Below are positions 23,681-47,731 of a stretch of DNA of 64,000 bases, in pieces. The position numbers were made by a program, and so were the translations under genes. This DNA comes from Diadema antillarum. Taxonomy: Eukaryota. Under the pieces are notes generated by a model. It saw nothing but the letters and a program-made list of their open reading frames with translations, searched no databases and was not told the origin of the DNA. The stretch lies in assembly GCF_040938485.1 (NCBI RefSeq), contig NW_027270892.1, positions 1,922,001 to 1,986,000 of the forward strand, read 5' to 3'. How positions within the stretch are numbered: the stretch's first letter is position 1; each line of letters starts with the position of its first letter.

Positions 23681-26600
23681 CTGCAAAGTAGTAGCAGGAA
23701 GAACAAATTAGCCACCAGTTACTAAAAAGTCTCTCTCTTTTAAACATATTATGTACAAATGATACTTTTTATCAAAAAAGTAAATCAAACATGTTTTTCG
23801 ATTGATTATCAGGGGCAAATTTGAAGAACAGTAAGTATCTGGATTCAGATGCTTTGGTTATTGACAAGTTTCTACGAAAATCACAGTGGGCATGCAATAT
23901 CAAGCACTGCCTTTTGTCCCTGAACATTGTAAGATGATGTTATTGTACATGGCAGGCATACATTGTATGAACACTGTGCTACACACAGCAGTGCAACAGA
24001 TTTCTTTGTTAATAAAAAGAAAATCAATCATGGGAGAATATGACTTTTTTTTTTTTTTTTTTTTTACAAGGAAGTTTGTATGATATCAGGAATTCATCTT
24101 TTGGTTTTAGTGTACATACTGATAAACTCACACTCATATTGTAAGGACATTATTTCAAGACAGCAGAATTTTGTGAATGATGTTCACATGCATAAAAATA
24201 CACACATTACATGTACACATACAATGTACATGTGTACACAAGCATGCACAAGTTTTGAAAATTACACTGTCACTATCAAGGAATTTATGAACATACATTA
24301 CTGTGTAAAAAAAAAAAATCTTGGCTAATTGTTCAATGAATGCTTTATTCTACCACATCTGCATTTGGGAATACCCTCTAATGAACATACAGTGCAGGGA
24401 TGCCAAGTTCAAAAACATTTTATGAGTGAGATTTTCATGACTTGGCATCTCGGCGCGCTAATGTGCGCATGAGAGAGGGTGTGGGAGGGCTTTTTCCCCC
24501 CTGTGGCCTCACACGGTAGGGAGCTTTCTCAATTTTAAGCTCTTAATGGTGTGATCAGGTGCATACTAAAAAGTGACTATTTTTTACTTATTTTGAAAGA
24601 CAAAAGGGAAATACACCTCCGATTGCAACTATCACTTTAATCTTTTGAGCTATGCTCATTATCATAGGCCCAAGTTGCAGACTTCGCCCGATGCGTGAGA
24701 AAAATGGGTGCCATGTGTGAGATTGTGAGATGGCACCTAAATGCTTGAGTCTCATGCAGAATGCGCGAGACTTGGTAGCTCTGACAGTGTAGTACAAGTC
24801 TGAGCACTCACAGATGTCACACTTTTTTAAGCAATCAGCATTTACAGTACTTAGCTTAAATCCTACTCCTTGTTTTTTTTTAAGCCTCTTTTAAAAACAA
24901 AATACATGTATCAGGGAATAGGGATACTGATTTCACGACATGTATATGTACTTAGGTACTATACAATGTAGGTACTTTGGTAGGTGGACCATGCAGCTCA
25001 GATGTATATTTTTGTTCACACAGAAACCCTCTTACACAGTACCTTTTAATGCATCTCAGAGAAATTGAAGAGAAAATTGAAGAGAAAGATGAGTGTGAAA
25101 CTGACAGGCATAACGTACTTTGTGACAAGATCCCTCTTTTGAAAACATGGGGAACATTACAATGCACATGTTCCTCATGTAGTATGCTGGTGACAGCAAT
25201 TTATGGTGACCAGCCCTAAACGAGTCTGACCTTACAAGAAATTACCTTAGATTCCACTATGAGTGAAATTAATTCACTGGCATGCAACGGTATTGAGACA
25301 CATCATAACAAGACATGATCTCAAAAAACAAAACAAAAACAAAAACAAAAACTGCTATTCTTGCGTGCAACAAGATATAATTTCAAAGTCCATCAAACTG
25401 CTTAAATTCATGTTGTGTAACACAGATGAAAATGGGAGGGAGAAGAATTCTTAAGCACCAAAGAATTTTTACTACAAAATGTATATACATTTGTATATCA
25501 AACAAGTTGGATATTACATGTACATGTACAATGTACATTGTAGGCCCTACAATATGTATATCTTATGCAAAAGCGCTGCCAATGCAGTATTACTGGACAT
25601 CAAACATACCTTCTGGAATACTGTCAGGAGAGCTAGGGGGAGGTGGACTTGGGGTGGGGGATGGGATGTTCAAAGCGGCCTGAATGGACTGAGGGGACGG
25701 CTGATCGATCTCGGGGTCTGGTGATTGTGGTTCCTCGGTGGGCAAAGCTCTTTCCTCCTGAGACGACTTCTCACTGTTGCCGTTCTTCCCGTCCATAACA
25801 GATATTCCATTTTCGGTCAGGAACTCGTCCAGGTCCATGTACTCTAGCTTGAGGTCGTCGTACGGTGTCTTTTCCCAGAGTGAGGGGCCGAGGAAGGCCG
25901 CTGCCATGTCTTCTGAGCAGTAGTCGAAGCTGTCGAGAAGGCCAGCCTCCTTGTCTTTCTTGCCATCTTTGTCCTTGCCTAAGACACAGGAAAGGAAAAA
26001 AAACATGAAAGAATACGGCTGAAAGTCTCTGTGTGAAGAACAATCATGATATGAAGTGGTCAAATTTTGTAAAAGCAAAGATGACTGTACAATGATACAG
26101 GCATTGTCATACAAAGGTAAATGTATTTCTTGGCATTGCACCCAGTACTATGGTACAGACTGCAGTATGAATTGTACCTGTGATGTACAAGTGATTAAAT
26201 TCCTGATTGTAAAGTACAGCACTGAACAGAGAAATCTACATGTATGTGTACATGTCATGCAGTTTTGAAGTTTGCAGTGCACTGAGCACTGTAGGTGGGA
26301 AGCTAGTACATCCTGATACATTGTATTCATTTTTGCTATAATACAAATTGTGTACACTATATTTCACATTTAGAATGGGCCTTATACATTGTACACTGTA
26401 AGTAACAGGGCATTTCAAAAGTAAAAGTGTACATGTACAATGTACATTTCACTATATAGGGATGTCAATTACAAAGATGATGTGTAATTTTCTGTTTCCA
26501 AGGTACTGTACATGTACAGTACATTGTACACCCCCATATGTTTTCTTTTAGAACAGTTTAATGTCATGAGACTGAGAGAAACAGATCTGTAACTTTGCCC

Positions 26601-29600
26601 AAAATTTTTGCAAAGAAGCAATTAGATTTTTCACGAAAATGAACAATTTGGGGTAACATTAATGATTATGCAATGCTAGACAGCCATCTACAAGTTGTGT
26701 TGACATGTATCATGTACATGTTACTATGATGGTCACTTTAAATAGAGAATGCTCTTTGAATAAAACATTGTTGTTTTTCAACTGAATGGCCTATTATTGA
26801 TTAGAAAAGATAACAGCTCTAAAATACCATTGAACATTGTGTTTCATACCCTTTACATGGCCAGCAAAACCGTGGGGGCCGTGGGGGCTTGGGCCCCCAC
26901 ATTTTTTGTGCACAATACAAAGAAATGCATAAGGTGTTATCACTTTGGGCCCCCACAATTTTTTTAACCCGGAAGTACGTAAGTGGCACTAAATAGAAAT
27001 AGAGATCTTGAAGTGTGAGCCCGGTACCTAGGTTATGTTTTTCCACTGAGGACCTCTTTGTGTGTGTGTGTTTTTTTTTTGCTTGTCAGCTGAACAGTGA
27101 AAAACCCAGAAATGGAAGGGGAGAGATGAGCTGAGCCGAGGACCTTTTTTTTTTTTTGCTTGTTACATTGTAGCTCATGAAACCCAGAAGTGGGCCCCCA
27201 CACTTTTGAAAACGCTGGGTTAAGCCTGCATGTACAAACATGTATAACTAGACAAAACTGACATACACAAGTGTGTAACCATTGCATACTTGCCAACATT
27301 TTGAAATCCTGAAGAGGTAGATTTTGCGAGGGAGCGAAGCGACCAAGCCCGAGCACGCTTGCGCGCGAGGGGGGGGGGTGTGGGAGGGGGGTGTCCCCCC
27401 TCCCGCGGTGTGGACTTTTTTTGTTTTTCAATATCAAAATATGAGATTTGGTGCACGCTTTTTAACCTTTTTAAAGGATTCTTGGTATTGATTAAAAAAA
27501 AGCATATAATCCATGTAAATCTATGAACTATTTTGTAGACTATGAAAATAAAATCAGACATATTGGTAAATAACTTTTGTAGGCTAAGCATATCAATGTG
27601 AAAAATCAAACATATCGTTATCACAAGTTAGATATAAAAATACATGTACGTTTAATACAATCACGTACAATGTACGTACACGGCCGGCCGGCTGGGATCA
27701 TGCCACGCCGTATGCCGCATCGGCCGCACCACGCACACGTGAGCTACCAAAACATTACTATTAAAGCATGGTTCTAGCTACACGTACAATGTACACGTGT
27801 ACAGTAAGTCTTGCACGCACGTAGATATGATAGACTAGTGCGCCACTGCAGTGTGCATACATGTGTGCATATTAGAAGGCTGAATACGGCGTTTTTGAGA
27901 AACGAGTTCCTTGAAATTATTATTAGTATTCTAATTACAATGTACTACAATTTTTGTAGCTTATTTTAGGGAATCAACGCACAATGAAGGGAAAATATGA
28001 CTTCTATTTCATTTTATGGTAGGTTTGCTACTAAATCGGTAGATTGGAAGAGAAAATCGGTAGCCGGTCAAAATCTCTAAAAAAGCGGTGGTCTACCGCC
28101 CAAAGCGGTAGAGTTGGCAAGTATGCCATTGAGTCAAGGGAATATTAAAGGTTCTACTGTTGAATGGCCCTCTACACCAAGTCTTAGACTTTATATGACA
28201 TCATCATACAAACATGTACATACAGTAGGTATTTTAAATTCAGGTGGTGTCTAGGTAATGATTTTCCTGGAACCGAGTGTAAGCCGATTGCCTGCAATGC
28301 ATTTTGTGATAGAGCCCTTACGCCACAGTAATTGCTAATTTGTAATTGTATTTGTATACTGACTATGACTTCTGCTTTACAAAATTTCATTTGCATATGG
28401 GTAGCCATACTGTCCTGTACTAGACTCCCGTTTGTTCAAGCATACATCATATACAATATAATTATGTTCGTCGACTACTGTATTTCCTCGCGTCGCTATG
28501 CTACATTGAATCATTTAATACTAAAACGCCGTATCTGAGGCTGGTTACTCAGTATGCAGTAGGCCTAGGCAGGACGCCGTGCGTGTATGATGCGATTGAC
28601 ACACAAGTGCGTGTGTATCTGTTATCATCAGCTACCCGCGCGCGCGGTTCCTAACTACACACACCTTCCTATACTGAGTACCCAAGGAGGTACAGTGTAC
28701 TTGCCTAGTACCTCCTTGCTATACCATTATCACATGTACACGTTTAGCGCTTCAGATCTTACGTACCGAGTGTTCTCACGTTGCTGGCAACGTGATTGAT
28801 CGCGACTCCGCATAGCGCATGCGTAAAATGCAGACACAATTTCTACGCAGTGTACAGTATCCAGTAGTACGAACGTACAATACACAATACGTATGGATCG
28901 GCATCATAAACAAGTAGGTTTGAAGCATGAGACCGGCCATGCCAAAGTACAGGTGCAGGTACGAGCGAGCGCGAGCACTTGTACTTGCAAACATAATTCA
29001 CACTTCCAATTCTGGCTGGTACAATTTATAACAGAACCAGGCACTACAATTAACATGCCCATATAGTAAGCAGAATCATCCCCTTCGCATAAATGCAGTG
29101 CACAGTTACACATGTATTTAATACTTGGCTTGATAATCGTAACAGTGCTGAATCGTAATCGTATCTCATCAAACTCCGATCATCAACTTGAATGGCGGTA
29201 ATATTTAATCAACACAGTAACAGTCGATCAGTCTACAGCTGTATGTAGATACGATTGAGCTCATTTGCTATTTGCTTCGCTCTCCTGCTCTTTACTTGGC
29301 ATTCACCTTACCAAAATTAGACTCGGATTAAAAAAAAAGGATAAAACAATTAATAAAGGTCCTATAGATCTATAACGTGAAACATTACTAAAAGGGAATT
29401 GAGAAGCTACTTAGTACTGTAGATCTACCGTCAAAACGACAAACGTTATAACTTTAATAGCGTGTTGGACCTCAACCACCCGTCGCTGTAAATTTATAGA
29501 AGTCGCCCAACAACTGTCCAATGACAATACGAAATGTCATCTCTAACGTTAGCCCGACCAGACACTGTTACGCTATGCGAAAACAGAGTCTGACGAGCGC

Positions 29601-31523
29601 GGCATGCAGCCTCAAAGTGAGGAACCTCAATACAACTACAAAACTTAGGAAAATGTATACTTTTCTTCTTTACACAGAATACTTTACTCACGTTAAATGC
29701 ATGTTTCTATTACAAAAGAACAGTTTGCCACACTGGGTCCATGGAGACAACTTGCGAATAGTCCGAGGAAAAAATAAATGACACTTTCTACCGCAAATCC
29801 TGACCATCTCAGGTTCGTCGTTGCAGGATTCAAAATGGCGCATTGACCTCTGCGAATTATGCGCATGCGTGACCGGAAGTGCTCCAGAGCGAGCGCGCGG
29901 CGTGTGCGTTGAAAGTGTCAAACAAACCTTGGCGTCTGCTACAAAATTAACCGTGGTATGGAGCTCAATGCTCCTCGCCCGACCAGACGCCAGCCGCCGT
30001 CGTCAAGCCCAGTACAGTTTATAGCTGTATAGTGTTGTACTAGTATTCTAAACCGTGCTTCGCATTGCGTCTGCATGGTGGTCGACAGCAGGATGACAGT
30101 CAGCAGTTACCATGCTCCATGCCATGCCCCACGCCGTGCAACTTTGCATTTCCTGTAAAAACGCGTTCACGCCGAAAAATGGTGGTTTTTACAGACATAG
30201 AGTGACAGCAGTAGCGTCCCCACGGACGTTTACTGCTGTCTATCGAAAGCCACATCATTATCATCGGAACGCTTTCATTTGCAGGTCATGCTACAAGTTC
30301 CTGATCCCTAAAACGCGCCCTGTGAAACCCGCGAAGGCAGGGAGCAAACGGGGTCATCGGAGGACATTGAAAACTCCAAACCCACATGGTGAGGATAAAT
30401 ATCACGGAATTCTACTAGACCCGTGTGTCAAAACATGACGTTAATTCCAGACCCTATATATAATTGTCATGACGCAACCATTATCCCAAAGGGCGCATTT
30501 GCATTTCCGTCAACTGTTTCGATGCACATTATATGAATGTTTTTTTGAAATAGAATGAAAACAAAACAAATCTTCCTTGCCGAAGATGTAGGCCCTATTG
30601 CAAAAATTAATGAGAACTCTATCAAAACATGGGTTCACGCTTTTTTCAACACTAATTCTACTCGTATAGGGGGTCGTGAGCTCTTACGTTATTTCGCTTA
30701 GATATGAGCGCATCTCATTTCACGTTGTATGTCGAACTACACTGTACTCTCATTCAAGACGGTGGTAACGTGGATATTTCGCCCCATGATGAGACGGAAG
30801 GGGAGCCATCCAGCACTCCGTCAGCAAAGCGGCAAGCATTGTTCCCCACACCGGGTCCGCTTCTCCGTTCCCAAGATCGCCAGATGAACCCGCTATGCCC
30901 CGTTGTGCCAGGTATACTCAATACCTTAATTATTCCAGTACTAAGACATACTAAAATTAAGACCAGCAAACACCACCCCCCCCCCACACACACACTAAAA
31001 TAATAATGATAAAAAACAATATATGTATATTTTATGTATATAAATCAAAACATCCACACAATGTACCAAGACCGTGTAGGGGGAGTGCTTGCGCCCATTT
31101 TTTTCCTTTTAATTTTGTTTAAACAAAAAAAAAGGGGGGCGCGCACGATGCCCCCCCCCCCCCATCCGCTACTGCTCAGAAACAGATTTTCTTTTCCCTT
31201 GTTTATAAGACACAGTTTAAGTTACATTTATGCAAGAGAATTAACGTTCTAAGTCATTGTTCTCAAGCCATTTGTTATGGGGAATTCAATAACAATCAAA
31301 ATCACTTCTTGTGTATGTAAAAAATACTCTCAGAAGATAAAGATGTAACAATAACAAATAGAAGAGGTGGTAATAGGGCCTATATTATGAAAGAATATAG
31401 CACCTACCATATCTGCAGTTAAAGGGAACGCAAACCCAAAGAGTGATGTGGATGGAGTGAAAGCAGCATTATTAGTAAAACACGTCAGTGAAAGTTTGAG
31501 GAAAATATAACAATCGATGCAAT

Positions 31524-31569
<46 letters not shown>

Positions 31570-31878
31570 GAGAGTATTAAGGAGGCGGTAGACGTTGCTT
31601 AATTGAATCCTCACAAGTGATTTTACTTCAAGCTTTCGGGCTTTCTGCCCTTTGTCAAGACTGAGGACAAATCGGACAAAATACAAAACATGGATATCAT
31701 ATATACAAACAATAATGATCAAAACAATAGTAAAAATAATGATAATAATATTTTTGTATATGTAAATATACAATACTGTATATACAGAAGCAACGTCTAC
31801 CGCCTCCTTACTCTCGTTACACACATTCCAAAAAGATGCGACGACCCAGGGGTTCAGTAGCTGAAGACGCACGTCTCA

Positions 31879-31917
<39 letters not shown>

Positions 31918-34900
31918 AGTTTTGGTGTTGGAACCGCTGTTTGAGGAGATAAGAAAAGGTTATGACGTATGAGTGGACAACAAAATACAGAACATAATGA
32001 AAAATATTCAACAAAAATTCCCTTTTTAAGTACTATGAAAGAGCACTCCACTATTTACGCTTTCAGAAAGCAGGAAGAATAATTAATACCCATAACATAT
32101 GTCAGTACAGCAAGTTGATGGAATTTCTAATTTGCATGAAAACAAAATTGTGGGATTTTCTTTTAATTTCCTTATTTTGTTGTCTACTCATACGCCATAA
32201 CCTCTAGTAGTCTCCTCATCCAGCTGTTCCAACAACAAAACTTCAAAATGTGTTACTTTTGCATCGATTGTAAGATTTTCTTCTGATGTGTTCTATAATG
32301 CTACTGCTTTCGCTCAATCCACGTTGCTCTTTGGGTTTGCGTTCCCTTGAGCCTACACTAATCTCGTCATCAATTAGATGCAGCCTAGATGTAATTACCA
32401 GAATTGTAGGCCTTAATTGACAAGCGGTAGAAGGGTATCTTGAATTTTCCCGACTCTCTTCTTTAATTTCATTTCATGTATTTTATTTATTTTTTTGGTG
32501 GGGTGGGGGCAAGTTTCACAAGATACCTGTATTCTTTAATATGGACTACACATAATGTGTTTGTTGTTGAGAGAGTGATGTTCGCCCTAAGAAATAACGA
32601 TAGAAAAATCCTAGGAATGGCATCATTTTGGTCTTCGCTAGTTTTGATTATAGTAGACTAAGCGCCCAACGAGATAACAACATCGAGCTGTATGGTGCCA
32701 TTGTCGTTATTTTTGTTCTTGAGCTGAGATTAGTCTCCATTTAGGCACATACGATTTCCATAGCCCAGATCATACTGGCTAAAAGCGACAGTGATGCTGA
32801 AGGTTTGACATTAATGCTATTTGTCATCGAAAAGTCCGTGGCGTATCTGCAAATATCCTCACCTGATTTCGATCTTATACAGACCAAAGAAAACAGACAG
32901 TTTTCAATTCTATTGTCTGATCTACTATTAGCTATACGAAAGAAGCATCATCTAGCATCAAAGCGCATCAAGGCTTAAATTCGATAACATGTATAAAGAT
33001 GTATTTAGACATGTATTAAAAGTAGAAACATTACAGAATCAATCTAGACAGCTTATTGAAAATCGTTGTGAACATGCATAACAAACGCCAATTATCAATT
33101 TCACAACAGATGGCGAAATTGCCCACGAGAACGTAGGTCCGCCGACTTCACCTACAGCTCTTCTTCAAAGAAAACAAAAAGATGCCGGCGTGCAGACAAA
33201 CTATCCGCCCTCATCATTTCTTCCACACGATGGAGAGCAGTCACTCAGCAGTGAACTGGACGATGATCTTCCTTGTCTACTACCTGAATGCACCGCCGGA
33301 CCAAAAACGCCGAAAGAGACGGCTATAGACTACATCGAAGTATCGAAGTATCGGCTTGCGTTTAGACTCTTATGTTTGAGTTACCCAGCGGCAAAGAAGG
33401 CACTGTCAACAGTGACGCAGGAAATTATAAAGGAAGAAGTAAGAGCACAAAATAAAAACAAAGTGCTACTGTATAGTCAAACAAATTTACATGCGTCTCA
33501 TTTTGATGAACATGCACAAGACAGCAATACTTATTCATTTTGCTCCAGTCGGCCATTTCTTTTCAGTCAAGAACATCCTTGTCATGGAAATTACATTCAT
33601 AATAATTGGAATTCTGTTTTACGTGAATTGGGTGATTACAAGATTGTAATGATTCTAACTTCGGTCATGTCATTATTTGGCTGCAATTTAGTGAAAATGG
33701 TACTTGCCCTGCCGTTTGTTTGTATTTATCAGGTTGGTTTTTTTTTTTTGGACATGTTTTATAGATGTGGTAGGTTCCTACGTGGATGTAGTTTGTCTTA
33801 AAAACAAATACTTCACTTAATAGTTGATATAATAAGTCAGTAGTTCACAATGGCAGCTCCCATTCAGTATGCTTTCCATATTTTCACCGACGTCAATTTG
33901 CTTCTTCTTTTTTATTCTACATAGGTGAAATCCATGAAGCGAAACAACCACAAAAAGAGTGGTTTCAGCCAGCCAATATCATTGGAACGGGTTGAAGAAT
34001 TCCGTTGGGAGAAACTCCTTGATGAAACGGAAAAGGTCATGCCGGTTGCCATTAGCTCCATGTCAGCCATGATGCCATCTATCAAAGAGGTCAAGGCAAA
34101 CAACGGAAAAATCAAAGGAAAGAAAGGCGCAAAGAGGTAAAGAAGAAACGATAGACAAATCATATAAACATGTAATTTAGTGTGGATAACAAATTTGTTA
34201 TTATTATTCGCAAGGTCAGTTTTAATTGCGTTAGCAAAATCATTATGTTTATGTATATTATTATATATTTGTGTGTGTGTGTGATAGGGAAAAAATGATT
34301 CTTGCATGGATATGCCAAAAAACCGCTTGCTCGAGATATAAAATTGCAAAGCACCTTCCAAATGAATTCGTTATAAAGTGGTGACACATTAAATGAATTA
34401 TTCAGAGTTTCAGAAGGCGCAATGAAGGATGAAAACTGTGACATGCCGTTTCATATTCTGCATTATCTCGATGCACATACAAATAGTTGTTATATTCGCA
34501 ACTTGCTGTTCTCTACTTTGCCCCTAACCAGAATTTTCAAGTAATTATACTCTTTTGCGAATTGATCGCCTCTTGTACATAGTTATTAGTAAACGAAATG
34601 TAAATTAGGGAAAAGAAAACAATAAGGATATAAACAGAATGGGGTGCAATATGAATATTATTTAATGAGAACTTGAAATGCGCGGACGTGAGTCCCCAAA
34701 GCGCAGTGCAAAAAAAAATATATATATATAAAAAAAAATAACTTCAAAATTTCGAATCTTCACATTCATGCATAAGAAATAAACAATAGGAGGAACAAAA
34801 TAACTTTTGTTTATCCACCAAGGTGTGTTTCTGACGATGAAGCCAAGGTATTCATTACTCGACGACTGGGTCAAATGGTAGCAATCGGAATGTTCTCGCA

Positions 34901-37900
34901 GGCACCACGCATATTCAAGTTTGTGCAGACATGCATGGGCATCGAGCTATGGCGGCAAGGAGTGTCCCAGAAGGTGTTCAAGACACTGAATCATAGTGGT
35001 ATCACCATCAACGCAAATACCGTGAGGTTACACGTGGATGTTGTCGCGCAAAATCATGACCAGCAGCTGAAAGAGTGGAAGAAGACGGTCGAGGTGATGC
35101 GCTCGTGTGTTCCATTATTTTACACTCTTGTTTCTAATTTAGACCCAATTGTTTTACAGCTAATGTTAAACCAGGGAAGTTGAAAGGTAACGTTGAGAAT
35201 GCACTCAGGAATCCCATAGGAAATACTGAACAAATAGCAACGTACATCTACCTCAATTCTTGGAACTTTGGACTACAAGTACTACTAAAAGGGGCCCAAA
35301 AAATAATAACGTAGAATACTAGAATGAAAAGTTTGGTATTGATCAAAATTACCATCCTTAGTGGATAGATAATGATATATTACGCTCTGCCTATATTTTC
35401 CCCGTTGTATTTTACCAGTTGCATGTTGAAAATATTGTTATTGCGTGTTTCAAGACCTCCTGTCCATGCGTTACGTGATCCACTGACTCAACTCATGCAC
35501 ATACATGGTATTTGTTAATTTACTCCACAAAAGAAAAGTGAAAAAAAGGGGAAAAAAATGTATTACTTTTAATTGGCAAAATATCCCTCCACACAGGAAT
35601 TGCCAACGAAGACAACTCGCCGGAAGCTAAAATTCAGTCCTTCTGCTCCAACGTTTGGGCTGTGCATTGATAACGTGCAGAAGGGAACAGAATCAAAGCA
35701 CCAAGGACTGACACGGGGTAACAAGTTCTTCCTGCAAACCATGTGCTATGCGGCCAAAGACAGGGTGCCACCTCCGATGTCTTCATCCACAGTGCTGGAT
35801 GCCGAAACCCTGGACCCCTTTGTGTTCTTGCCCTCTCCGGACGTCATGGCCAGGCACCGAATGCGCCTAGTGGATGTAGTGGCCAGCATCATGGGGAAGC
35901 ATATGACGTACTTGGAGGATTTATCACGCCACCTCCCCATCACCCAAGAGCATGAAGAGAGTGCCGCTATGTCGAAAAAGTCTGAAATGGTAAGGGAATT
36001 TGTGGAGGCCCAAGCTCCATCGATATGATTGTTGATATCAATAAATTGAGAAAATTTCCATAAGTTATTAATCAAGGTTTCAATATTGGTTAAAAGAAGA
36101 ATCAAAACATAGCTTTCTGGCATACATTAAAAGACAAGCTATTCCTCGATTTAAACAGTAGGACGGCGTGCCCCTCAACCACAATAAGAAAATTGTCCGA
36201 AGATAAATTTAAACTGTCAATTCACTTTTAAAATTGAAAAATTATATGACAATACTTTGAGGGGACTCATATATTTGCCATTCGGGTAATGTAAACGTCA
36301 ATTTTATCCCTGTCCTAGGTGACATTGGGTGTTGTAAACGCTAATCCCAGCACAACACAAGGGATGGTAACAGTGTTACAGCATCTGCAGCAGTATGTTC
36401 CCGAGAAGAGGGGAAGCCCCATTCAGACCCTCGTCAGCGGCGACGGATTGACCATCGAGCGCATCCTACATGCTCAGCGGGCGAGATCGAATGGAGAGAA
36501 CTGGAAGGCCCGACTGGATGCATTCACTCCGGCACCCCAGGAATTTCACAAGGAAATTCTACTTCTGCAGGTATGTCTAACTCTCGTGAAATAAAAGCTA
36601 TGAAAGAATAGACACGAACAACTGATTAATTTCACCATGTTATTTATTATCTTCGCTCCATCCAAGCGAAGAATGATTACGTAAAGCCTGCATTGTACTG
36701 ATAGTGTACAAAGTTGTTTGGCCTATGTTTGTTTTGACACATTATGATCAAAATGTTATTGGTACTACAAAAGCTGCTTCATAACAATGTTTTCTGAAAT
36801 TTTTCTTTCGAATCAAAATATAGACGTTACCATAAGAACTGCTTCCCACATTATTGATAGACAGATATTTCGTGTCAGGTCCATTACAAGTAATACTCCG
36901 ATCTACGTTACACAACTTTGATATCATCAGTTTGTCTGTACTATGTGACATTTCCCAGAGACAATCGAGAAAGGACGAATGAATAATACCGAGAACAATT
37001 ATGTCTGTTCTTTAACGAACACCGGCCACGCGTTGATACAGCTACGAAGCATGATACACAAACAGATGTTAAAGTCATTATATAGTTTTGGTAGAGAACT
37101 AACTTCAAGTTTCTAACATTTTTTTGGGCGACAAAATGCGAAGCAAATTTTGGAATATAAAAGAGCATGTAATTCCAAGAGAATTTACGTGTTTTTTCAT
37201 GAAAATTGGTCATTATATGACTGAGTCACCACAAACAGCAATCCTAATAAAAGGTGGGATGGCTTTGTTCTACGTTGTTTTTGGATGTCTCAGCCATTCC
37301 AAAACAGATTTTGATCGAATGAACTTTCAATTCCTCTTAGACGTAGATATACTCTGTACTCTTTCGTGAAGTGCATGATTTCTCGATATCTCGCAAAAAG
37401 GTGAAAGCCCAATCCTCAGTTCCACCAATATGCCAAACCATCCCTTAACAGAGTGACTGTTTCTGCTAACTAATTATTCAAAAGAACCTATCATTTCAAC
37501 ATAATTTCCTCCTTGTCAAGGACTCAAACAACGTCTTCTTTCGAGGGAAAAGCATTTCTGCCAAAGGGACAATCGCACAGTTGAAGTACGATTACAACCA
37601 CAACTCTTTCCGGAAAGACGTTATGCAAAATGTTCAGCATACCTGGGATATGTATGAGGTAAGACGTTTCATAATTAGCAATTTTAGAGTGGAATGTAGG
37701 GATGACAAGACAGGGATAGGTCACAACCTGTATCTATAGTGTGTAATAGAGGGTGACAGTGTATTTTTGCTCTAATTTCAAAGAAAATGAAACATAATGA
37801 AATGGATGCAACGGAATTTATATAGTATACTCAGTATAGTAAAGCGAGATTAATGATGCATAGGGCAGAAAATGGGGAATCACAAATTTAATGAATGGTA

Positions 37901-40900
37901 GCATCATATTGCATTGTGAATGCATGATATACGCGTAAAGTATATTCATTCTTGTGCCAATTTTCGTGCTGAACAGTTCGTGACAGAGGGATACACGCTC
38001 CTTTGCGCCCTTAAGTTCTGTGGAACATCGTCTCTAAATGAGGTCCCTTACACTTTTCCGGTTGACGGCAGCAAAATGGAACAGCTACAGTGGGTCAAGG
38101 GTGTGGCTCAACAAGTCGTGGACTTCGTCTACCATGAACCAGACAAGTCATCAATACAAGTTGCAGCAGAGGCGTACAAAGATGACGTGGGAGAAGAAAC
38201 AGAGGATGCTCTGGCGTACTGTCACTGTAAAACTGGTTAGTACCCTATGGCAGTACTCCTACTATAAATCACTTCCCCACCATGATTTAAGGTTTGCTTG
38301 TTTTGTCATGTAACGTTAAGTTATCATTCAGAATAAGGATAAACAACCCCCCGCCCCCCCCAAAAAAAAAAACAACAACAACAAACAAACAAACAAACGA
38401 ACTGGTTAGTACCCTATGGCAGTACTCCTACTATAAATCACTTCCCCACCATGATTCAAGGTTTGCTTGTTTTGTCATGTAACGTTAAGTTATTCAGAAT
38501 AAGGATAAACAACCCCCCGCCCCCCCCAAAAAAAAACAAAACAAAACAAAACAAAAACAAAACAAAACCAAAAACAAACGAACGAACAAGCAAACAAAAC
38601 AAAACAAAATTGAAAAAAAGAAAAAAATTCCATGGCGACCGCAATACATCCACTACATATTTATTTATTTATTTATTTATTTGTTTATTCATTCATTTTT
38701 GTACAATACACACTGCCATTGCCACAGGAAGGCGACAATCTCAAATGAACGGCAAATAAACAATATCCGGTACACTATGATATTGTACACAGATTTTCGT
38801 GACATTGTTGAGCGGCATAATATGGAAACAGACAAATCTAATTACATGTATTCTCACTTGACCGTTCTGACTGCATGTATATGATCCCAAACTTTCCATG
38901 TATAATCGCTGAGTGGTAATGCATGTATGAATTCCAAGTCCAACAGGACTGATAAGCGTATATATTCATTTTTTTTTTCAGTATATGGAATAGCGTCACC
39001 CGAGCATAAGCTAATCCAATTTCGATACTTTGTTAACATTGACGTAAGGGCTCAAAACTGCTCTTAGATACATGAACGGTACATTCAGGTACCGCATTGT
39101 AGGCATAAAGCGGAAAAATGAGAGGAAACAAGTAAATGTGCTCAGGAGTGTACTCTTAGTGTAAATATTTCGATTGAACCGCAGTTTGCATAGTTTACAG
39201 AAAAATTCATGTATAATTCCGGAATAAGAACATACATGTACTTTGAAACTTACATCATATCGACATAGAAAATCTGGTAATTGTTCATGTTTCTAATCTT
39301 CTCGCCGATTTTGATTATGTGACATGTGCATGAATCCTTTCTCAATTATCTGTGTAGAGAAAGACGAGGAGATGGTTCAGTGCTGCAGTTATGCATGCCA
39401 CAAAGCCTGGTTTCATCTGGGTTGTGTCGGATTAGCATCTGCTCCAGATGACGACTGGTACTGCAGCGCCGATTGTGAAAGCAGTCCAAGCTACGTCTAC
39501 TGTGTGTGTAAGCTGAAAGTTGATCCAGAAGGCGGTACAAGAATGGTACAGTGTGCTTTGCAGCGGAATTGCAAGGGTCATGAATGGTATCACTACAGAT
39601 GCGTTGGGCTCCAGGTCACCGATGTACTACCGGGTGAGAAGAATTATGTTCGTGCATAATAAATGTGGAGATCTATGGACGGTGCCAACGATTTATTTAC
39701 AAGCATGAGCTGTTTGTCTTGCGAACTGAATCAGGTAGAAAAATTCTCTCATTACAGCTTATTATCAAATATGCGATAAGTATTCAAGGATGGTGTTGTA
39801 ACACGCTTGATCTAGTACCCATTAAGGCCTATGGAAAAAGGTAAATACTATGTCATTTCACTGTTTCCTGAGACGTGATTTTTTATTACTGTAGACAAAT
39901 GGTACTGTGGAGAAGCATGTGCCCTTGACTCTGAAGACGACGACCATGTGCTGAATCACAGTAAGGCTATCACTCTGGAGGGACTGCGTCATCAGGCAAG
40001 ACGAGCTGCAGTGCGGGCTGGAAATGGACCCGTCATGGTTGACGACTGGAAAATTGATCTCCTATCGTTCTGGTCAAAGAGGCATCCGAAATACCTCATC
40101 AACGCCCACTACTTCCTGGCATGTGAGTCTAGCACAATGTTTCTGTAATAATATAATACAGACAGACATATATTTGAGATATTCAATCACCAGAGGAAAT
40201 AACAGTTCATTTCGGAGAAACTACAGGCCGAGTCTCTCGAGCAGAGATTGTTTTTGGAAAATGCAGATGACTGTCAAAGAGTATTTCAATCAGATTTTAA
40301 TATCTAGAATTTCATTCATTTTTTTTATATCTATTCCAGGTGTAGGAGGATTTGCTCCCCAAAACACACGGACTAGCTTGATCTGGAATAGGGTGATCAA
40401 CGTTGCTGGAAGACGTGGAGGAAACATTGGAATGGACCTTGCCACTGAGCACATCAACTTGGAGTACAAAGGTATTACGTGGTAGATGTGGGAAAATATG
40501 TGAAAATATGTGTGATTAATAATGTGTAATTATTTTTCTACCGATAGTGATACGCGATCTTTCACCATGGAGACGGTACTGTGAGCTGCGTGCATGATTT
40601 CGAATCAAATAGGTTAGTGAGAAGAGTCGTCTTGCCGGTATCGGTCATTTTTGCAAAAGCATGCCCGATTCTGAAACGATCCTTTCCTATCCTTTTCACC
40701 TTCCGCTCCCCGGCAACTGATGAAGAGGGCGGTGTTTTGGGACTAACCTGTCTTTCAATTTCAGTTTTGTTTTGTTTTTGTTTTGTTTTGCTAACTCCTG
40801 ACGGGGTGTCGCCGTTTATTTTGGCCAATGTTTTGGTATTTCATTTATATATAATTATATATATATATATATATATATATACAAACACTATATAATATGA

Positions 40901-43900
40901 ACATATTTATTCATTAATTTATGCATGTATTTCATATTCACCTTTTTTTTTGCAGAGACGATAAACCATTGTCGTGGAAATGTGACAGAGAGGCATGCCG
41001 ACCGATGTGCCAAGATGTCTGGCCCTTTCGGTCGGTACCTGGACGATATGTTCAGTGACGCCGGGATCGTGTCTATGAAAACCCCATCACGAAAAAGGGC
41101 AGAAAACCTGTACAAGCAGGACGTGCTGTCATTCGTCAGTGAGAATCAGCGAGCTGCGCTATTTGAGTACTTGCCCTTCAGAGAACACGATGGTTTCGAG
41201 GGTTTTGATGGCAGACATGTTGTGAAAGCCCCGTGTAAGCTTGGACAGAAGTTGAAGGCCCTTTCCAGAAGAATGGATGCACAACGCCGAACTGTACAAT
41301 TGTGTCGGAATACAGACTCTCACTAGGAAAGACCATGTTAGTGATTCACGGTGTCACAAACTGAGCAGCAGGGACCCACTTGCTCTCTCGTCTGCTCCAT
41401 GCCTGGTACAAACAATGCTTTTAATACAGACTGCCGGATGCAGCATGACAATTTGAGGATGTCGCTCATCTCATCATCAAGCCATCTCTTGTTGACGGAG
41501 CCTGGTGGAAGGTACATGATTGCTCTCCCCCGTCTTCCGTCACGGCCACAGCGTCCCGTCTCCTGCCAGTAACTAAGGACGTCGCTTGGCGGTCCCCAGT
41601 GAATGACAGTGTCCACATCCGGAACATCCACTCCAAGCCCGAAGGCAATGGTTGCGATCACGCAACGAAGTGTAGAGCCCTTGGAAGAAAAGTTCATGCT
41701 TATTCTTTCCTGACTGTCTATGTCCGTGGACGCATGAAACATTTCAGAGAGTCTGTTGTGCACAGTACATGGCTGTTCAGAACCTGTAGAGTGTCCATCT
41801 TTCTGCAGTGATTCATTGATCCAGAGATAAAGTTCACTGACGTGGTCGATATGTCTGTAGGAACAAAACAAAATGATGCCATGTGTCAACATTAAAGCAA
41901 TCTATTTTCTTCACATTTTCTAATTATCTTTTCAAACATAAATTATTGGTTATGAAGAAAATCTAATTTTAAGAAGAAACTGATTTTTCTTTCAAAGTTG
42001 ATTTTCAAAAGATGTAGGGCCTCAGGTGTAGGTCTTCATGCATTACGGTTCTCGTTTGCTTTATAGAAATTGTGGGTACCATATTAATGTATTTTCTGTT
42101 TATCCAAGGTAATGTGCCAAGTATACATGTATATTGGGTATTGGTATGGTCTTCATAATTTAGTTGACGTCGATAAAACGTTTAAAAACTATTTCGGCAC
42201 TCATCTTTAAACACCGCGCCACCAGAATTGATAAGTCATGCAAACAAAAATCGAAGGCTCGATTTTTAGTTTACTTACCGAGCATATATGATGGTTTTCC
42301 GGGCCCTGGTTCCTTTTTGCTTCAGTTCCTCGATGTACCATCCTAGAGCCTCTTGCTTATTGGGGACTCGAGCTATTTCTAGGTGAATGTTTGGCCTGCA
42401 ATATTTGATAAATGGTATATTTATGAGATGTAATATAGGTGTTCGTGAAACAAGTCTGAAGAAAATCATATTTCATAATTACTGTGATTTACAGCGTAAT
42501 TGACTGGCATTCAAATGTATCTATCGGAATCAAATCTCCCTTCAAGTTTACCAGGCCGAGTTCTTGCAGTGGTAAGTTTTCTCCCTTTAAAGTAAATTAT
42601 AATTTATATCAATATAAGTTATAGCTCATAGGAAAACGGGTTGTAATTTACTCTAAACCCAGATCTGGATCATGAGAACGAATGATGACTCCTTTTCATA
42701 TCAGGGAAAATATAATCGACCGGGCGAAAAAGAATTACATATAGCTTGTAGGCCTACATGTATTCGGATACATGAATTTCACAAACTACATAAAGACGGA
42801 AATAAATATTTGGAGAAATGAGTCGTTGTTTGTAGCTTACGGTATTAAAGGGAAGTAGTTGGCTAACAATTTAGAGCCGCGTGATAAAAACACACCGTGT
42901 GCATGTGTTCCCGCTTCAAAAACAACAATACATTGCATTAGGCACAACTGAGCCCACATGTTTTCCTTATGTATTACACAGGCGGCGGTATATGATAGGT
43001 GGGAGAAACCTTTCTTTTACCAGTTACTACGTTGGTCGTGCAGGTTTTATATGCTCCACGGGACATGTGTCGCTGACGTTCAACTTCAGTTATCTGTCTT
43101 AACATCGTGTTCGTGATGAGTGTTATCTGTGCACCGAAAACATTACATTATCATAGCTATAGTGTATCCACTACCAGTAGTAGGAGGATTTTGTTGTGCA
43201 CATACGTTTGTGATTACGTCACCTGCAAGTATACAGCCATGGCGAAAGAAAAAATAAATGGGGTATAAAATGCGGAAGTTCCACGTGTTGTTTTTTTCTA
43301 AAATCCGTGTCATCGCGCATTGAATTGTTGTTGCTGTTGTGTTTTTGTTTGCGTCTCAAAACCACCGTCTGATGACCACAGATGATTTAGTCATAGGTGA
43401 AAGTTGACATATTGGTATAAGCACAGCAGAAATAAGAATCGTTCATCTTGCGCATAACTCTTTAGCTGATTTTAGCGGGTATATGTCTTGAAGAGGAGAA
43501 GCGAGCAAAAGCCTTATACATGAAAGAGAAATATCGGCTGGTATTAATGCGATCGAAGTATCGGGAAAAGGGGAGGCGTCTGTCCACTTGAGGGCTATGA
43601 GCGGAGTAATTTACATGTTATATTTTTGGGACACTGATACATTTCATTTCAATGGATATAGTAGTGTTTCAAACTGACATTCGATGCCTCACATGCATGT
43701 GACTTGATCCCTGAGAACGAAAAAAAAAAGTATTAAAGGATTTTTTTTTTACTTCTGTTCATTACCAATAGATTTATGACATTCCGCGGATGTAACTAGT
43801 ATGAATGAATGAGGCGTCGATGTTAATAAATACCTGTCTGGAGATAAAGCGACGATTTTCACTTCCTCTCGTCGGAGACTCAGATTTTCGCACACAGCAG

Positions 43901-45903
43901 TAACCATTCTGTCAGTGCATGTAGCGGACAGCATTAAGACAGGGCATGTTAGTCTTGATCGCAAAGTATGAACTCTCAGGTACTCCTCTCTGAATGTCAA
44001 TCCCCTGCACATACACGACAGTTAGTCATAGATAGGAAGAACAGTACAATAACAATATTTTACTTCCGTTAAGAAAAAAGAAAGAAAGAAAGATTATGTC
44101 CGTATACAAGACAGAATGTAAACGGGTCTGATGATTTATCGCGTGTTTATTTCTGTAATGACTGTAGTGTGTACATGCAGTTACAACAAACATATAGTTA
44201 TAATCAAAAATCCGGCGATCAGTTAAATGTCCTAGCCATTTATCAATCAGAGCGCTAATAGTACAGAATATGTTCTATATAATTCTTTCATGTAGTATGC
44301 GTAGTTCCTTGCTTAGTTTGGTCACTATAGGCCCATCCTGTGCAAAATTCTAATGTCAAACATCTAGCAAGAAGTGAATCTCAGAAAGCATAACTACAGT
44401 TCCCTCTCACGTGCGCTTGTTTGAAATTTTGATATGCTATAAGGTCATCATCTAACAAAAAAATAAAAAAATAAACAGTTGCATGTTCGACCTCCCCTAT
44501 ATCAAATCAAATTTTAGCTAAATAATAACTATTTCGACATTCGCTACCCCAAAATCACCCAAAGAACGTGGATAGAAAACTTTCCTTTAAATCAGGGCAC
44601 GGTATACAGCCGATAGTTCTTCGGCAGCTGCGTGTTTTAATTATCTAGTCGTCCATATTCTGATTAGGGCCTGTCCCGACATGTCCATGTCCGGATAGGA
44701 GAGGTCGGACTGTATATTCTTCAATCTTTTACCTCAGCTGAAAATATGGAAATACTTTATTTCAGTTTAAATTGGGGTGTCTAGGACTCAGGCATTATGT
44801 TCCCATAACATCGCAAAACCATCTCATTTGATTCATTATACATGTATCTGCAATAAGTATGTTCATCGAGTACGTTCAATTATGGTACAGTTTGAAAAAT
44901 TAATCCAGTTAAGTTGTCAGCAGTTTTATGTATAACATTGCACTTTGGAAGGTATAACGTATAAACTTGCCATTTTGTCAGACAGTGAACTTCGTCAAGT
45001 ACAAGCAAGCAAATCCTTTCTTGGAACTTCCGCACCCATTTCCACCATTTCGGTGACATGATGGCCTCTGGGGACGTGAAAATGAGATCTCTCTCTCCGT
45101 TCATTAGATCTGATGGGTATATAAAGCGAGAAGTTGAAAGTAGAACATAATTCAAACATGCTAATCTACCATCAACTTATATCCCGATTTAGTGCTCATT
45201 AAGAAACGATTATCTTTATAACGTACACTGTATAATGGATACATAACGATTTCAACATTGATATTACGTGTTTTCACTTTCAAAACATATCGATAGATTT
45301 TTCTAACCCGAACTGATATCTAGTTGCTGATTATGATCATTCTATACGAGAGACAGTTTGATTCACCTATCCATTGCGGAGACTAAAGGCTGATTCCGGA
45401 TTAAACTTGTTCGACAAGAGTACAACTGTTTTGTACAGGCATTACGGGAAGAAGCGAGATACTCTTTGTGTGTATATCATACATGGGAAAGGGGGGGGGG
45501 ACAAAGGGTGCAAATTGTCAACAATTATTAGAAAATCGAGAGCAGACTGGGATCAATGAATTTGTTCAAGAACACAGGAAACTTCCGGTAGTTTTCTGAA
45601 TTACCATTTTCTGTCAACCGGTCCATATCCATCCCGGAATGACCGAGAATGGCCGCAGTTCTTATTCCATGTGACTCCCACCTTCGCATCTGATCCATCA
45701 TTAGACTTTTTAGCGGACTGACCACGAGGGTCATGTGTCTTGTCTCTGGATTCAACTGTCAAAAAAAGAAAAAAAAATCTACAATGAGCGACAATGACAT
45801 TGAGATACTGTGACTTTTCATATTGCTGTTATATTTCTATACATTAAAAGTAATGTTAAAATATATAGGCCTATATGTCCATATGACTCGTTATAGGGAT
45901 AAA

Positions 45904-45951
<48 letters not shown>

Positions 45952-46672
45952 GCACCTAGTAGTACAAACTGTTTTCTACTTTATACCTCCCATACACAGC
46001 TCCTTTCCACAGCGGTCCTTCCTAGGATTTATCGAACCAGTCACATTGTCACTTTCATAATGCTTATCTTCTTTTTTCCCCTCTATGATAAATATACGCT
46101 TGATTATATATAATTCTATGGGATTTTTCTCAATACGAATTAAAAGGGGGATCAGCACACAAATAGATTGATAAGTTTGTATCATCATTCAAATTAGCAT
46201 GCCATAAAAATTTATATCATAATGTATAATAGGTCTATTAATGTAATGAATGAATTATGTTGCCACTGTAGTGAATTAAGGTTTTGTAGGTAGGCCCTTT
46301 GGGCTTGTCAGATATTCAAGACCTAAAGACCTTTCCCTTATTCATTCATCCGTATTTCAGTAATTCAATGAGGAAATAATGATAACCAATAATCATCGAC
46401 TGCGAGAGCGCGAGGTGTTTATCAAGCCGAGCCGCAACTTGCCAAAGGCTGATAGACACCTCAAGGATCACCGATCGAGGTTATGTTAGATTTTATCCAT
46501 TACCCGAGAAATAGATGATTATTTGCTTTATATCCAACATCGATTTACAAAGTCGAACGAGATATGATTAAAGAAAAATATTCCATCAACCGTGCGGAAT
46601 ATGTCTACAACTCAGGCATGACAGGTTGCACCGTAAAACCACGGCAATCTGATAAATTAGAGTAGCGTCAAT

Positions 46673-46706
<34 letters not shown>

Positions 46707-47731
46707 AGAGTACACACAAAAAAAACAACAACGACAAATAAACAAAACAACACCTGCCTTGTCCATGAGTGGCCCAAAGAGAACGTACGGGATACTTTTC
46801 CCGTATGCGGTAGGCAAAATGGCCAAGGTGTGACTTCCTCCTGCCAGACTGTCGATTATCTCCACTTGTTTTGTTTTGAGTACGAAACTTTCACCGAACA
46901 TTTCGGTCGCTACTTTACGAATACAAGACTGATTATCCATGTCTAAAATGAGAAGAGTATGTGAGAAGTATACACAAAGGACGCAGGACAAGATGAAGAA
47001 GAAGAAGAAGAAGAAGAAGACAAGGGACCGGAGTGGACAGGTGTACGTGTACGCTTGAGAACGTATTACACAACCTATGGTATGACGTAAGTACTGCCTA
47101 ACGTCGTCTGCTTGTGGAGAGATCTTATGCGTGCGTGCGCGGCTTGAGTGTAGCAGCACGGTCGGCAGCGCGACCTTTTGAAAGGGCATTCACATCACGT
47201 GACCACCCGATATCTGAATTTGGCCTGGCGTGAAAGATTGTGTACCGTGTGGACATGCTGGATATGATGATCAATTTCGGTAAGTTTCATTACGTACATT
47301 TGAATACTGATAGCATCAGATGTAGAGTAAATATTGAAGAGTGTACTCGATGAGTTTGAGGTGACAAAAATGATCGTAAGTATCAAAAGTCAAAGCTATC
47401 GTGATACGATTACGTCGCTCTCCTAGTGGTTGGTGGTCGCACTCGTACAGCCCTGTCGCGACGTACCATGTACAGCGACTGGGCTGTGTATAGTTACTCT
47501 AACGTTAACATTTATTTGTCTGGAACTTGTCTATTCCGACAATTTATTGGTCAAGGTGGTTGAAACAGAAGAAGGCACTTAGATTGCCGATTTTTTTTTC
47601 TTCGTCTCACCTTTTTTCGAATCATTGTTGCCCGATGGAGGCTGCAGAAAACTCGGATTTTCCAGTAACGATTTTAGGGTTATCCCACGAATGTCGCTCA
47701 AGCGCTCTTCCATTCCCTCCATTAGATCCAT
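23244..47731 (-). CDS. HLF: PAR-bZIP transcription factor (HLF/TEF/DBP/Pdp1 family), 308 aa; join(complement 47611-47731, 25610-25978, 23244-23680)
   Basis: Exon 1 reads [28 protein letters not shown] (PAR-family TLxxLLENP-like motif) with donor G|GTGAGA. Exon 2 has [32 protein letters not shown]. Exon 3 has the PAR + basic + zipper region [54 protein letters not shown]. All introns are GT-AG and phase 1/1; total 927 nt with TAG stop. The symbol stands for the single invertebrate family member. Confidence 0.93.
24395..24783. mobile_element. Non-autonomous element with 6-bp TSD (IS3EU-like), in HLF intron 2
   Basis: CAGGGATGCCAAGT / ACTTGGTAGCTCTG with ACAGTG on both sides. Confidence 0.7.
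25610..25978 (-). CDS. HLF: PAR-bZIP coding exon 2
   Basis: Acceptor TCTTAG|GC and donor G|GTATGT; contains the conserved [10 protein letters not shown]...[10 protein letters not shown] block. Confidence 0.93.
26856..27229. mobile_element. Diverged copy of the 599-1147 MITE family, in HLF intron 1
   Basis: Shares GGGCCCCCACA..TTTTTTAACCCGGAAGTACGTAAGTGGCACTAAA..GAGATCTTGAAGT and the right-end CACTTTTGAAAACGCTG; TSD not recognisable. Confidence 0.7.
27285..28125. mobile_element. Non-autonomous element with 13-bp TIR and 6-bp TSD (IS3EU-like), in HLF intron 1
   Basis: CATACTTGCCAAC / GTTGGCAAGTATG with CCATTG on both sides. Confidence 0.78.
29975..30109 (+). mobile_element. 135-bp diverged Academ-type miniature nested at the transposase start codon
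   Basis: Starts TCGCCCGACCAGACGC and ends CAGTTA; flanks CAATGCTCC / CCATGCTCC (8/9). The last 25 nt match the big element's right end at 14/25 positions without gaps. Confidence 0.6.
30112..41326 (+). CDS. Academ transposase with two PHD fingers, ~1115 aa; join(30112-30388, 30702-30911, 33110-33438, 33925-34136, 34823-35093, 35597-35989, 36319-36570, 37521-37658, 37977-38235, 39358-39633, 39895-40122, 40340-40471, 40956-41326)
   Basis: All 12 introns are GT-AG with matching phases; 3348 nt, no internal stop. N-terminal CxxC...CxxC. Putative catalytic motifs CIDNV (exon 6), SGDGLTIER (exon 7) and DLATEHIN (exon 12). PHD1 [30 protein letters not shown]; PHD2 [28 protein letters not shown]. 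The first two exons are least certain (alternative ATG 30124, alternative acceptor 30759). Confidence 0.85.
31423..32347. mobile_element. Kolobok-like non-autonomous element in transposase intron 2, carrying a nested MITE
   Basis: TTAA|AGGGAACGCAAACCCAAAGAG ... CTCTTTGGGTTTGCGTTCCCT|TGAG; same family as 62276-62827. Confidence 0.7.
31567..31818. mobile_element. MITE with ~33-bp TIRs nested in the Kolobok-like copy
   Basis: AACGAGAGTATTAAGGAGGCGGTAGACGTTGCTT / AAGCAACGTCTACCGCCTCCTTACTCTCGTT; next to a (TA)n run. Confidence 0.7.
38231..38560. repeat. 169-bp tandem duplication starting at the exon 9 donor of the transposase gene
   Basis: AACTGGTTAGTACCCTATGGCAGTACTCC... occurs at 38231 and 38400. 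Confidence 0.85.
41338..46940 (-). CDS. RecQ-like superfamily-2 DNA helicase of the AcademH element, 425 aa; join(complement 46758-46940, 45605-45755, 44971-45109, 43834-44004, 42279-42395, 41338-41854); possible extra upstream coding exon 47075-47189
   Basis: Motifs I LPTAYGKS, Ia [69 protein letters not shown], and a C-terminal Cys cluster (CCSVC). 1278 nt uninterrupted when two GC-AG introns are used. Confidence 0.9.
46388..46522. mobile_element. Small palindromic repeat in a helicase intron (10-bp terminal IR plus internal hairpin); family unassigned
   Basis: AATAATCATC / GATGATTATT ends; internal GAGGTGTTTATCAAGCC ... GGCTGATAGACACCTC. Confidence 0.45.
47611..47731 (-). CDS. HLF: PAR-bZIP coding exon 1 (40 codons + 1 nt)
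   Basis: ATG at 47731-47729 with an in-frame upstream stop; [10 protein letters not shown] motif; phase-1 donor matches the phase-1 acceptor at 25979-25980. Confidence 0.88.

Follow-up and report, generated by a model that had tools for sequence, protein, structure and literature searches.

The window analysed here (64,000 nucleotides of Diadema antillarum, contig NW_027270892.1, positions 1,922,001 to 1,986,000 of the forward strand) contains a clock-family transcription factor gene of the PAR-bZIP type whose first intron harbours a large DNA transposon with genes for a DDE transposase and a RecQ-like helicase, as well as a miniature derivative of the same transposon (Table 1). We read the large element, with a probability of about 85%, as an AcademH-type DNA transposon that is autonomous and complete in structure, belongs to the animal branch with PHD fingers and has inserted in intron 1 of the PAR-bZIP gene.

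Table 1. Features of the transposon, its host gene and the mini element (positions in the window)
Feature	Position	Strand	Basis or remarks
Host PAR-bZIP coding exons 2 and 3	23244..25978	-	Exon 2 25978-25610, exon 3 23680-23244; orthologue alignment
Left TSD copy, 9 bp CTCTAACGT	29541..29549	.	Repeat comparison; 9-bp TSDs likewise around three S. purpuratus copies
Whole transposon, 17,947 bp	29550..47496	.	5' TAGCCCGACCAGAC ... GTGTATAGTTA 3'; ends homologous to S. purpuratus copies L001-L003 and to the mini element
Left subterminal palindrome, ~10-bp stem	29559..29592	.	Begins 9 nt from the tip; DNA fold z = -3.5
Transposase gene, 13 exons, 1096 aa	30112..41326	+	65% identical over its whole length to S. 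purpuratus P0151 (1104 aa)
Transposase exons 1-7	30112-30388, 30759-30911, 33110-33438, 33925-34136, 34823-35093, 35597-35989, 36319-36570	+	
Transposase exons 8-13	37521-37658, 37977-38235, 39358-39633, 39895-40122, 40340-40471, 40956-41326	+	
Nested foldback repeat in transposase intron 2	31419..32348	.	Unrelated family, relatives at 62272-62831
Exon 10, two tandem ING-like PHD fingers	39358..39633	+	Pfam PHD; between second D and E of the catalytic domain
RecQ-like helicase gene, 6 exons, 425 aa	41338..46940	-	65% identical to S. purpuratus product
Helicase exons	46940-46758, 45755-45605, 45109-44971, 44004-43834, 42395-42279, 41854-41338	-	
Right subterminal palindrome, 13-bp stem	47447..47487	.	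Stops 9 nt from the tip; DNA fold z = -3.9
Right TSD copy, 9 bp CTCTAACGT	47497..47505	.	Repeat comparison
Host PAR-bZIP coding exon 1, 40 codons + 1 nt	47611..47731	-	92% identical to residues 1-37 of L. pictus TEF-like P0181
Non-autonomous derivative, 103 bp	55157..55259	+	Both ends as in the full element; end comparison

The ends of the element could be set without using the flanking repeat, because TAGCCCGACCAGAC and GTGTATAGTTA match the ends TAGCCTGACCAGAC ... GTGTATATTTA of the S. purpuratus copies. With the ends fixed by this homology, the chance of the perfect match (9/9) between the two copies of the target site duplication (TSD) is ~4e-6; the identity of the repeat extends to 11 bp because the TA following the right copy happens to equal the first two bases of the element. 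The TSD of the mini element is also 9 bp long, with 8/9 positions equal (55148-55156 / 55260-55268), and all three S. purpuratus copies have perfect TSDs. True terminal inverted repeats were ruled out, the two ends having in common only TA and a short motif offset by 10 bp. Each end carries a subterminal palindrome, the left one at an equivalent position in S. purpuratus and D. antillarum elements; the position of the palindromes is kept in three urchin families.

All introns of the transposase gene are GT-AG, and its spliced reading frame is unbroken. The protein has a CxxC...CxxC zinc finger at its N-terminus and an intact catalytic triad (D439, D585 and E966, in CIDNVQ, SGDGLT and ATEHIN), whose alignment columns are conserved with those relatives that retain the triad. 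Pfam detects DUF6589 (113 bits in the full-length homologue) and PHD alone. In a model of the S. purpuratus homologue the first D lies in strand 1, the second right after strand 4 and the E on a helix, as in RNase H-like folds, and the top structural matches of the transposase model were the P element, Hermes, HIV integrase, ISCth4, RAG1 and Transib, with Z of 4.7-8.8 on a scale where 8-9 is middling only, according to the tool's own note. Like hAT (Hermes), P element and RAG1/Transib transposases, the protein has an RNase H-like DDE core split by a large helical insertion domain; unlike them, it carries a PHD pair within this domain, whereas they share no sequence similarity with it, have other TSD lengths and come without a helicase partner. 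All 20 matches to the PHD pair in a PDB sequence search at E<=0.01 were ING/Yng/Png2/Pho23 PHD fingers, and Foldseek matched the pair to ING PHD-H3K4me3 complexes with a probability of 0.99-1.0. A search of protein collections for other copies gave no match to transposase exon 7 above 77% identity.

The helicase gene is convergent with the transposase gene, the two stop codons being 11 bp apart, and likewise has an unbroken spliced frame. Its product contains the full SF2 motif set, including PTAYGKS, DEVHC and SAT, and its closest solved relatives in a PDB search are WRN, RecQ, RECQL4, RECQ1 and BLM; the same search with the first exon returned no matches, and the protein collections gave no match to the last-exon ORF above 62% identity. 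As in the RecQ helicases (WRN, RecQ, RECQ1, BLM), motifs I-VI are present, the DExH motif is DEVHC and a cysteine cluster occupies the position of the Zn-binding subdomain. This cluster is short and gives no Pfam RecQ_Zn_bind match in the window protein, while some relatives carry RecQ_Zn_bind. The protein differs from RecQ helicases in being only 425 aa long, in lacking winged-helix and HRDC domains and in its Walker A, AYGKS. The first-pass annotation had proposed an intact 18-kb element with a perfect 9-bp TSD, an intact spliced DDE transposase with two PHD fingers and an intact spliced RecQ-like helicase; the ends, the 13 exons with DUF6589, the D-D-E triad and Pfam PHD, and the six exons with SF2 motifs and RecQ-family PDB matches bear out all of these.

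The nearest relative is a family of three 15.6-kb copies in S. purpuratus (XP_030828475.1, that is P0151, with a 423-aa helicase), which are 99.9% identical and each flanked by its own, different perfect 9-bp TSD. This family has the same gene order, convergent orientation and 13 + 6 exons as the window element, and homologous ends; its helicase model, which we rebuilt, agrees with the annotated 423 aa. The transposases are collinear across 13/13 exons, seven of them equal in length. The two families differ in that protein identity is ~65%, dS is saturated and introns are not alignable, and intron growth has made the window element longer by 2.4 kb. A dN/dS of 0.107 (transposase) and 0.094 (helicase), with dS > 2 against S. 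purpuratus, shows that both genes have been under purifying selection. Loci in L. variegatus and D. setosum are long genes with dead DDE triads and decayed helicases, and were of no use for defining ends. In a D. antillarum pair of 20.07 kb, the members of which are 99.7% identical, shifts within 20 bp revealed no TSD of 3-10 bp, a point that counts against our reading of the window element.

The host protein, 308 aa from three exons, is 77% identical to L. pictus TEF-like. It has a PAR region, bZIP_2 and an N-terminal exon common to orthologues, and its relatives carry PF07716. The membership in the PAR-bZIP family (HLF/TEF/DBP) thus stands; the name HLF, given in the first-pass annotation, holds at the level of the family only, the nearest named orthologue being TEF-like. 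The insertion had been placed ~110 nt into an intron 1 of 21.6 kb that would measure ~3.7 kb without the element, and this agrees with our measurements: the insertion point is 114 nt into the intron, which is 21,632 nt long and 3,676 nt minus the element and one TSD copy. The helicase gene lies in sense with the host gene. The L. pictus orthologue has no such element in its intron 1 of ~1.7 kb; alignment to L. pictus is confined to exons (77-79% nucleotide identity), so that an empty site cannot be demonstrated against this species.

Rust fungi are reportedly, in Kojima's work of 2020, the group where helicase-encoding Academ elements were first seen, and the same work reportedly describes a PHD-bearing animal sublineage of AcademH. 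In PMC10045372 (citing Kojima 2020, Mob DNA 11:15), AcademH is given TSDs of 9-10 bp and an encoded helicase; AcademX, placed there in the same superfamily, has an XPG nuclease in place of a helicase and a TSD of 3-4 bp. We found no XPG domain in the window element proteins with Pfam. The label AcademH with a PHD insertion, already chosen in the first-pass annotation, fits every feature tested, namely the DDE transposase, a separate helicase gene, the 9-bp TSD and two PHD fingers inside the transposase, none of which differs from the PHD-bearing animal branch; membership is by features. Homology to the Academ superfamily is probable, judged from the uncharacterised Pfam family DUF6589 and from architecture. 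DUF6589 is reportedly enriched in rust fungi (bioRxiv 10.1101/2025.10.24.684071), and the literature searched on DUF6589, Academ with PHD and Academ with sea urchin contained no text tying DUF6589 to Academ. The accessible AcademH literature contained no description of palindromes 9-11 nt from the tips, of the 11-bp stop-codon spacing or of a conserved GC-AG intron. The window element adds a new, well-preserved copy to a transposon type that is rare but already described.

This assignment by features leaves a small chance that the element belongs to another superfamily with TSDs of 9-10 bp or a helicase (Mutator/MULE, KolobokH or Helitron), MULEs having TSDs of 9-11 bp. Pfam, however, finds no MULE, THAP or Rep/PIF1 domains in the element proteins, long terminal inverted repeats are absent, the TSD is not TTAA and the helicase is RecQ-like, not PIF1-like; the enrichment of DUF6589 in rust fungi, reportedly the first source of helicase-encoding Academ elements, argues in the same direction. 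Mutator/MULE was rejected as a candidate, with neither a MULE nor a SWIM match and ends that have only TA and the offset short motif in common. Even more improbable, in our judgement, is that the locus resembles the DDE-dead relatives of Diadema and Lytechinus and represents not a mobile element but a gene pair that became fixed and was possibly co-opted. Such catalytically dead, long-spanning relatives in other urchins would accord with co-option, and a dN/dS of ~0.1 fits a host gene as well; the window protein, however, retains D, D and E, the element is bounded by the precise ends of its family and by a perfect TSD, the window also contains a mini derivative, and the 1.7-kb intron 1 of L. 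pictus is without the element.

Less easily set aside, though still unlikely, is that a complete-looking copy is unable to move itself, being recently dead and at most mobilised by other copies, with expression impaired by a GC donor, nested repeats and a duplicated donor. The helicase introns 1 and 3 are GC-AG, and the intron-1 donor is AAG|GCAGGT in the window copy, where S. purpuratus has GT; the helicase frame requires this donor, so that the protein would be lost if it were unused. Transposase introns 2, 7 and 9 are 2-4 times as long as in S. purpuratus. Foreign repeats are nested in introns 2 and 7, and in intron 9 a 169-bp duplication has copied a donor site. Against this, helicase intron 3 is GC-AG in S. 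purpuratus too, which indicates that the element family tolerates GC donors, and the remaining splice sites are canonical and the exons untouched. We retain the reading of an autonomous AcademH-type transposon. The window copy is probably recent; from its intact ORFs and perfect TSD we reasonably infer that it is young and possibly active or polymorphic.

For such an element the following course of transposition may be proposed. The transposase would bind ends that lack a real terminal inverted repeat but have a palindrome 9 nt inside each tip, and would cut and join them with a 9-bp stagger, while the helicase would unwind or remodel DNA, either at the ends or during repair. The PHD fingers may anchor the complex to H3K4me3 chromatin close to gene starts. 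The insertion has given the first intron of the host a gene in sense orientation that comes with splice sites and a terminator of its own. A more speculative version, which we consider doubtful, is a chromatin-guided, hairpin-dependent transposon, in which the PHD pair steers insertion into H3K4me3 nucleosomes downstream of the transcription start site (TSS) and the helicase extrudes the palindromes for end recognition by the DDE transposase. Both insertions in the window, the element and the mini element, are close to gene 5' ends; in S. purpuratus TSS targeting is unsupported, because none of the three copies lies at an annotated gene start. If true, this mode would be one not known from any eukaryotic cut-and-paste family.

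Academ is, to our knowledge, among the least studied eukaryotic transposon superfamilies, and we know of no member tested at the bench. A complete copy, whose ends are known exactly and whose two genes are readable, is a concrete starting point for a transposition assay; the 103-bp mini element offers a natural substrate, and the model urchin S. purpuratus has a multi-copy sister family of near-identical members. Such a copy also opens the question of what roles the helicase and the PHD pair play. As to the host, a PAR-bZIP gene with 18 kb, including a sense-oriented gene, inserted at its very start could have an altered output, if the allele is real and expressed.

A search with one transposase exon returned sea-urchin proteins, including a 1104-aa S. 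purpuratus protein encoded on six contigs. Three of its loci have in common a 15.59-kb block, 99.9% identical between copies, that begins with TAGCCTGACCAGAC, ends with GTGTATATTTA and is flanked in the three copies by GAGTCTAGA, CGCTAGGCC and GGGCCAGGA, respectively, each perfectly duplicated. The tips of the window element are homologous to the tips of this block exactly where its own 9-bp duplication joins, and its boundaries thus have support beyond the repeat; given ends fixed in this way, the chance of a 9/9 match is ~4e-6. The element of ~18 kb with a perfect 9-bp target site duplication (TSD), claimed in the first-pass annotation, was thus borne out: two copies of the nonamer CTCTAACGT enclose 17,947 bp that start with TAGCCCGACCAGAC and finish with GTGTATAGTTA.

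Features of the window (coordinates relative to the window)
Feature	Position	Strand	Description
Host coding exons	47731-47611, 25978-25610, 23680-23244	-	308-aa PAR-bZIP protein
TSD	29541-29549, 47497-47505		same nonamer at both junctions
End palindromes	29559-29592, 47447-47487		each from 9 nt inside the tip; fold z -3.5 and -3.9
Convergent gene ends	41324-41340		stop codons of transposase and helicase
Intron repeat	31419-32348		foldback in transposase intron; relatives at 62272-62831
Second intron repeat	37082-37446		in transposase intron; relatives at 49018-49399 and 54089-54240
Tandem duplication	38231-38568		169 bp, in transposase intron; takes in exon-9 splice donor
Run of N	48240-48454		215 N, ~500 bp upstream of host start codon
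Mini element	55157-55259		103 bp; 5' 19-mer as in the window element, one mismatch; 3' end related

Residues 1-1104 of the S. purpuratus protein aligned to window positions 30124-41320 as twelve collinear blocks. Junction optimisation resolved the window transposase into 13 exons, with GT-AG introns throughout and a frame open over 1096 aa; overall identity to the S. purpuratus protein is 65% and rises well above that in the core. A model of the S. purpuratus gene whose translation reproduces the database protein exactly likewise has 13 exons, 7 of which equal the window exons in length. The Pfam family DUF6589 was detected both in the exons of the window gene and in the complete S. purpuratus homologue, where it scores 113 bits; candidate D, D and E residues are retained in the motifs CIDNVQ, SGDGLT and ATEHIN. 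In the AlphaFold model of the homologue's core (mean pLDDT 71.5) strand 1 holds the first D, the second comes directly past strand 4, and a helix further along carries the E. The top VIA-align matches, at middling Z scores of 4.7-8.8, were uniformly DDE enzymes (P element transposase, Hermes, HIV integrase core, ISCth4, RAG1 and Transib). The two PHD fingers that had been proposed are encoded by exon 10: all 20 PDB sequence matches at E<=0.01 were ING/Yng/Png2/Pho23 fingers, and Foldseek matched the fingers to ING-H3K4me3 complexes with a probability of 0.99-1.0. Both fingers have, reading by eye, what we take to be the Y...M...W positions of the ING2 methyl-lysine cage. An abstract by Kojima reportedly describes a PHD sublineage of AcademH.

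On the minus strand, tblastx against the S. purpuratus element revealed six conserved helicase blocks. The exon 3/4 junction is workable only as a GC-AG intron (ATG|GCAAGT at 44970/44971 in the window; ATG|GCATGT at 21812/21813 of L001, one of the S. purpuratus copies), which follows DEVHCLTKW, is kept in both, and when spliced brings back RecQ-like protein sequence. With this junction, the S. purpuratus model is exactly the annotated 423 aa, and the window model is 425 aa, 65% identical to that product. All SF2 motifs are present, and the nearest solved relatives of the last exon are WRN, RecQ, RECQL4, RECQ1 and BLM, in agreement with the earlier RecQ-like designation. Helicase intron 1 requires a GC donor in the window (AAG|GCAGGT, 46757/46758), whereas S. 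purpuratus has GT. Of the claim of two uninterrupted spliced genes, the open frames stand; this donor is the single respect in which the intactness of the copy is open to doubt.

Compared with S. purpuratus, the transposase has a dN/dS of 0.107 and the helicase one of 0.094 (dS above 2), and both proteins were therefore needed over the whole family history. The two genes converge, with stop codons 11 bp apart, as against 27 bp between gene ends in the S. purpuratus family. Past each stop codon, the nearest AATAAA or ATTAAA is 426-565 nt away and inside the partner gene, so that the 3' UTRs must, we infer, overlap tail to tail.

Real terminal inverted repeats were not found at the ends of the window element and are absent from two further urchin families; all three families have palindromes with stems of 10-13 bp at both ends. 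Those of S. purpuratus (L001, 9633-9659 and 25179-25205; z -5.7 and -5.5) have the same offsets as in the window and a different sequence, and those of a D. antillarum family (copy L007, 6711-6750 and 26725-26755; z -4.7 and -4.3) start 11 nt inside the tips. Position is kept and sequence is not, which suggests that the structure itself has a use; any action of the helicase on it is speculative. Two 20.07-kb copies of the D. antillarum family (L007/L008) are 99.7% identical and share the transposase/helicase layout of the window element; no TSD of 3-10 bp was found at them for any boundary shift within 20 bp. The mini element has a 9-bp TSD matching at 8/9 positions, and lies, in either intron 1 or the promoter, ~1.1 kb upstream of the ATOX1 exon (about 56360-56440) encoding the MTCGGC copper-binding motif.

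With L. pictus 'thyrotroph embryonic factor-like' the host protein shares 77% identity, and exon 1 shares 92% with the first 37 residues of that protein. The name HLF given previously is therefore correct at the family level only. Intron 1 measures 21,632 nt, of which 3,676 nt remain once the element is subtracted, confirming the 21.6 and ~3.7 kb proposed; the L. pictus orthologue has an intron 1 of ~1.7 kb and a total coding span of 3.5 kb. The helicase runs in the direction of the host gene and the transposase is antisense to it. Host exon 1 and helicase intron 2 both end in phase 1, so an in-frame splice from host exon 1 to helicase exon 3 would be possible in principle.

Other Diadema (P0012/P0168 and P0022) and Lytechinus variegatus (P0058/P0177) proteins match single exon blocks of the window transposase at 55-80% and about 30-60% identity, respectively; in each, between one and three of the D, D, E residues are gone. 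The corresponding genes (loci L005 and L006) span 20-72 kb and adjoin decayed helicase remnants. On this sequence evidence these proteins may be Academ transposases that sea urchins have domesticated.

The defining features of AcademH are a helicase and TSDs of 9-10 bp, whereas AcademX has 3-4 bp TSDs and an XPG nuclease (PMC10045372). The window element has a helicase and a 9-bp TSD, so the AcademH assignment made initially holds on both defining features; Pfam found no MULE, THAP, PIF1 or XPG domains in its proteins or in the full-length transposase homologue. In the protein collections, identity did not exceed 62% for the last-exon ORF of the helicase and 77% for exon 7 of the transposase. 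With 4,569 nt of coding sequence in the two genes, and assuming that ~4-5% of substitutions make stops and that the indel rate is ~15% of that of substitutions, a frame would usually be broken once neutral divergence exceeded ~0.3-0.5%. The unbroken frames, together with the perfect TSD, point to a recent insertion of what is a well-preserved member of an already known transposon type.
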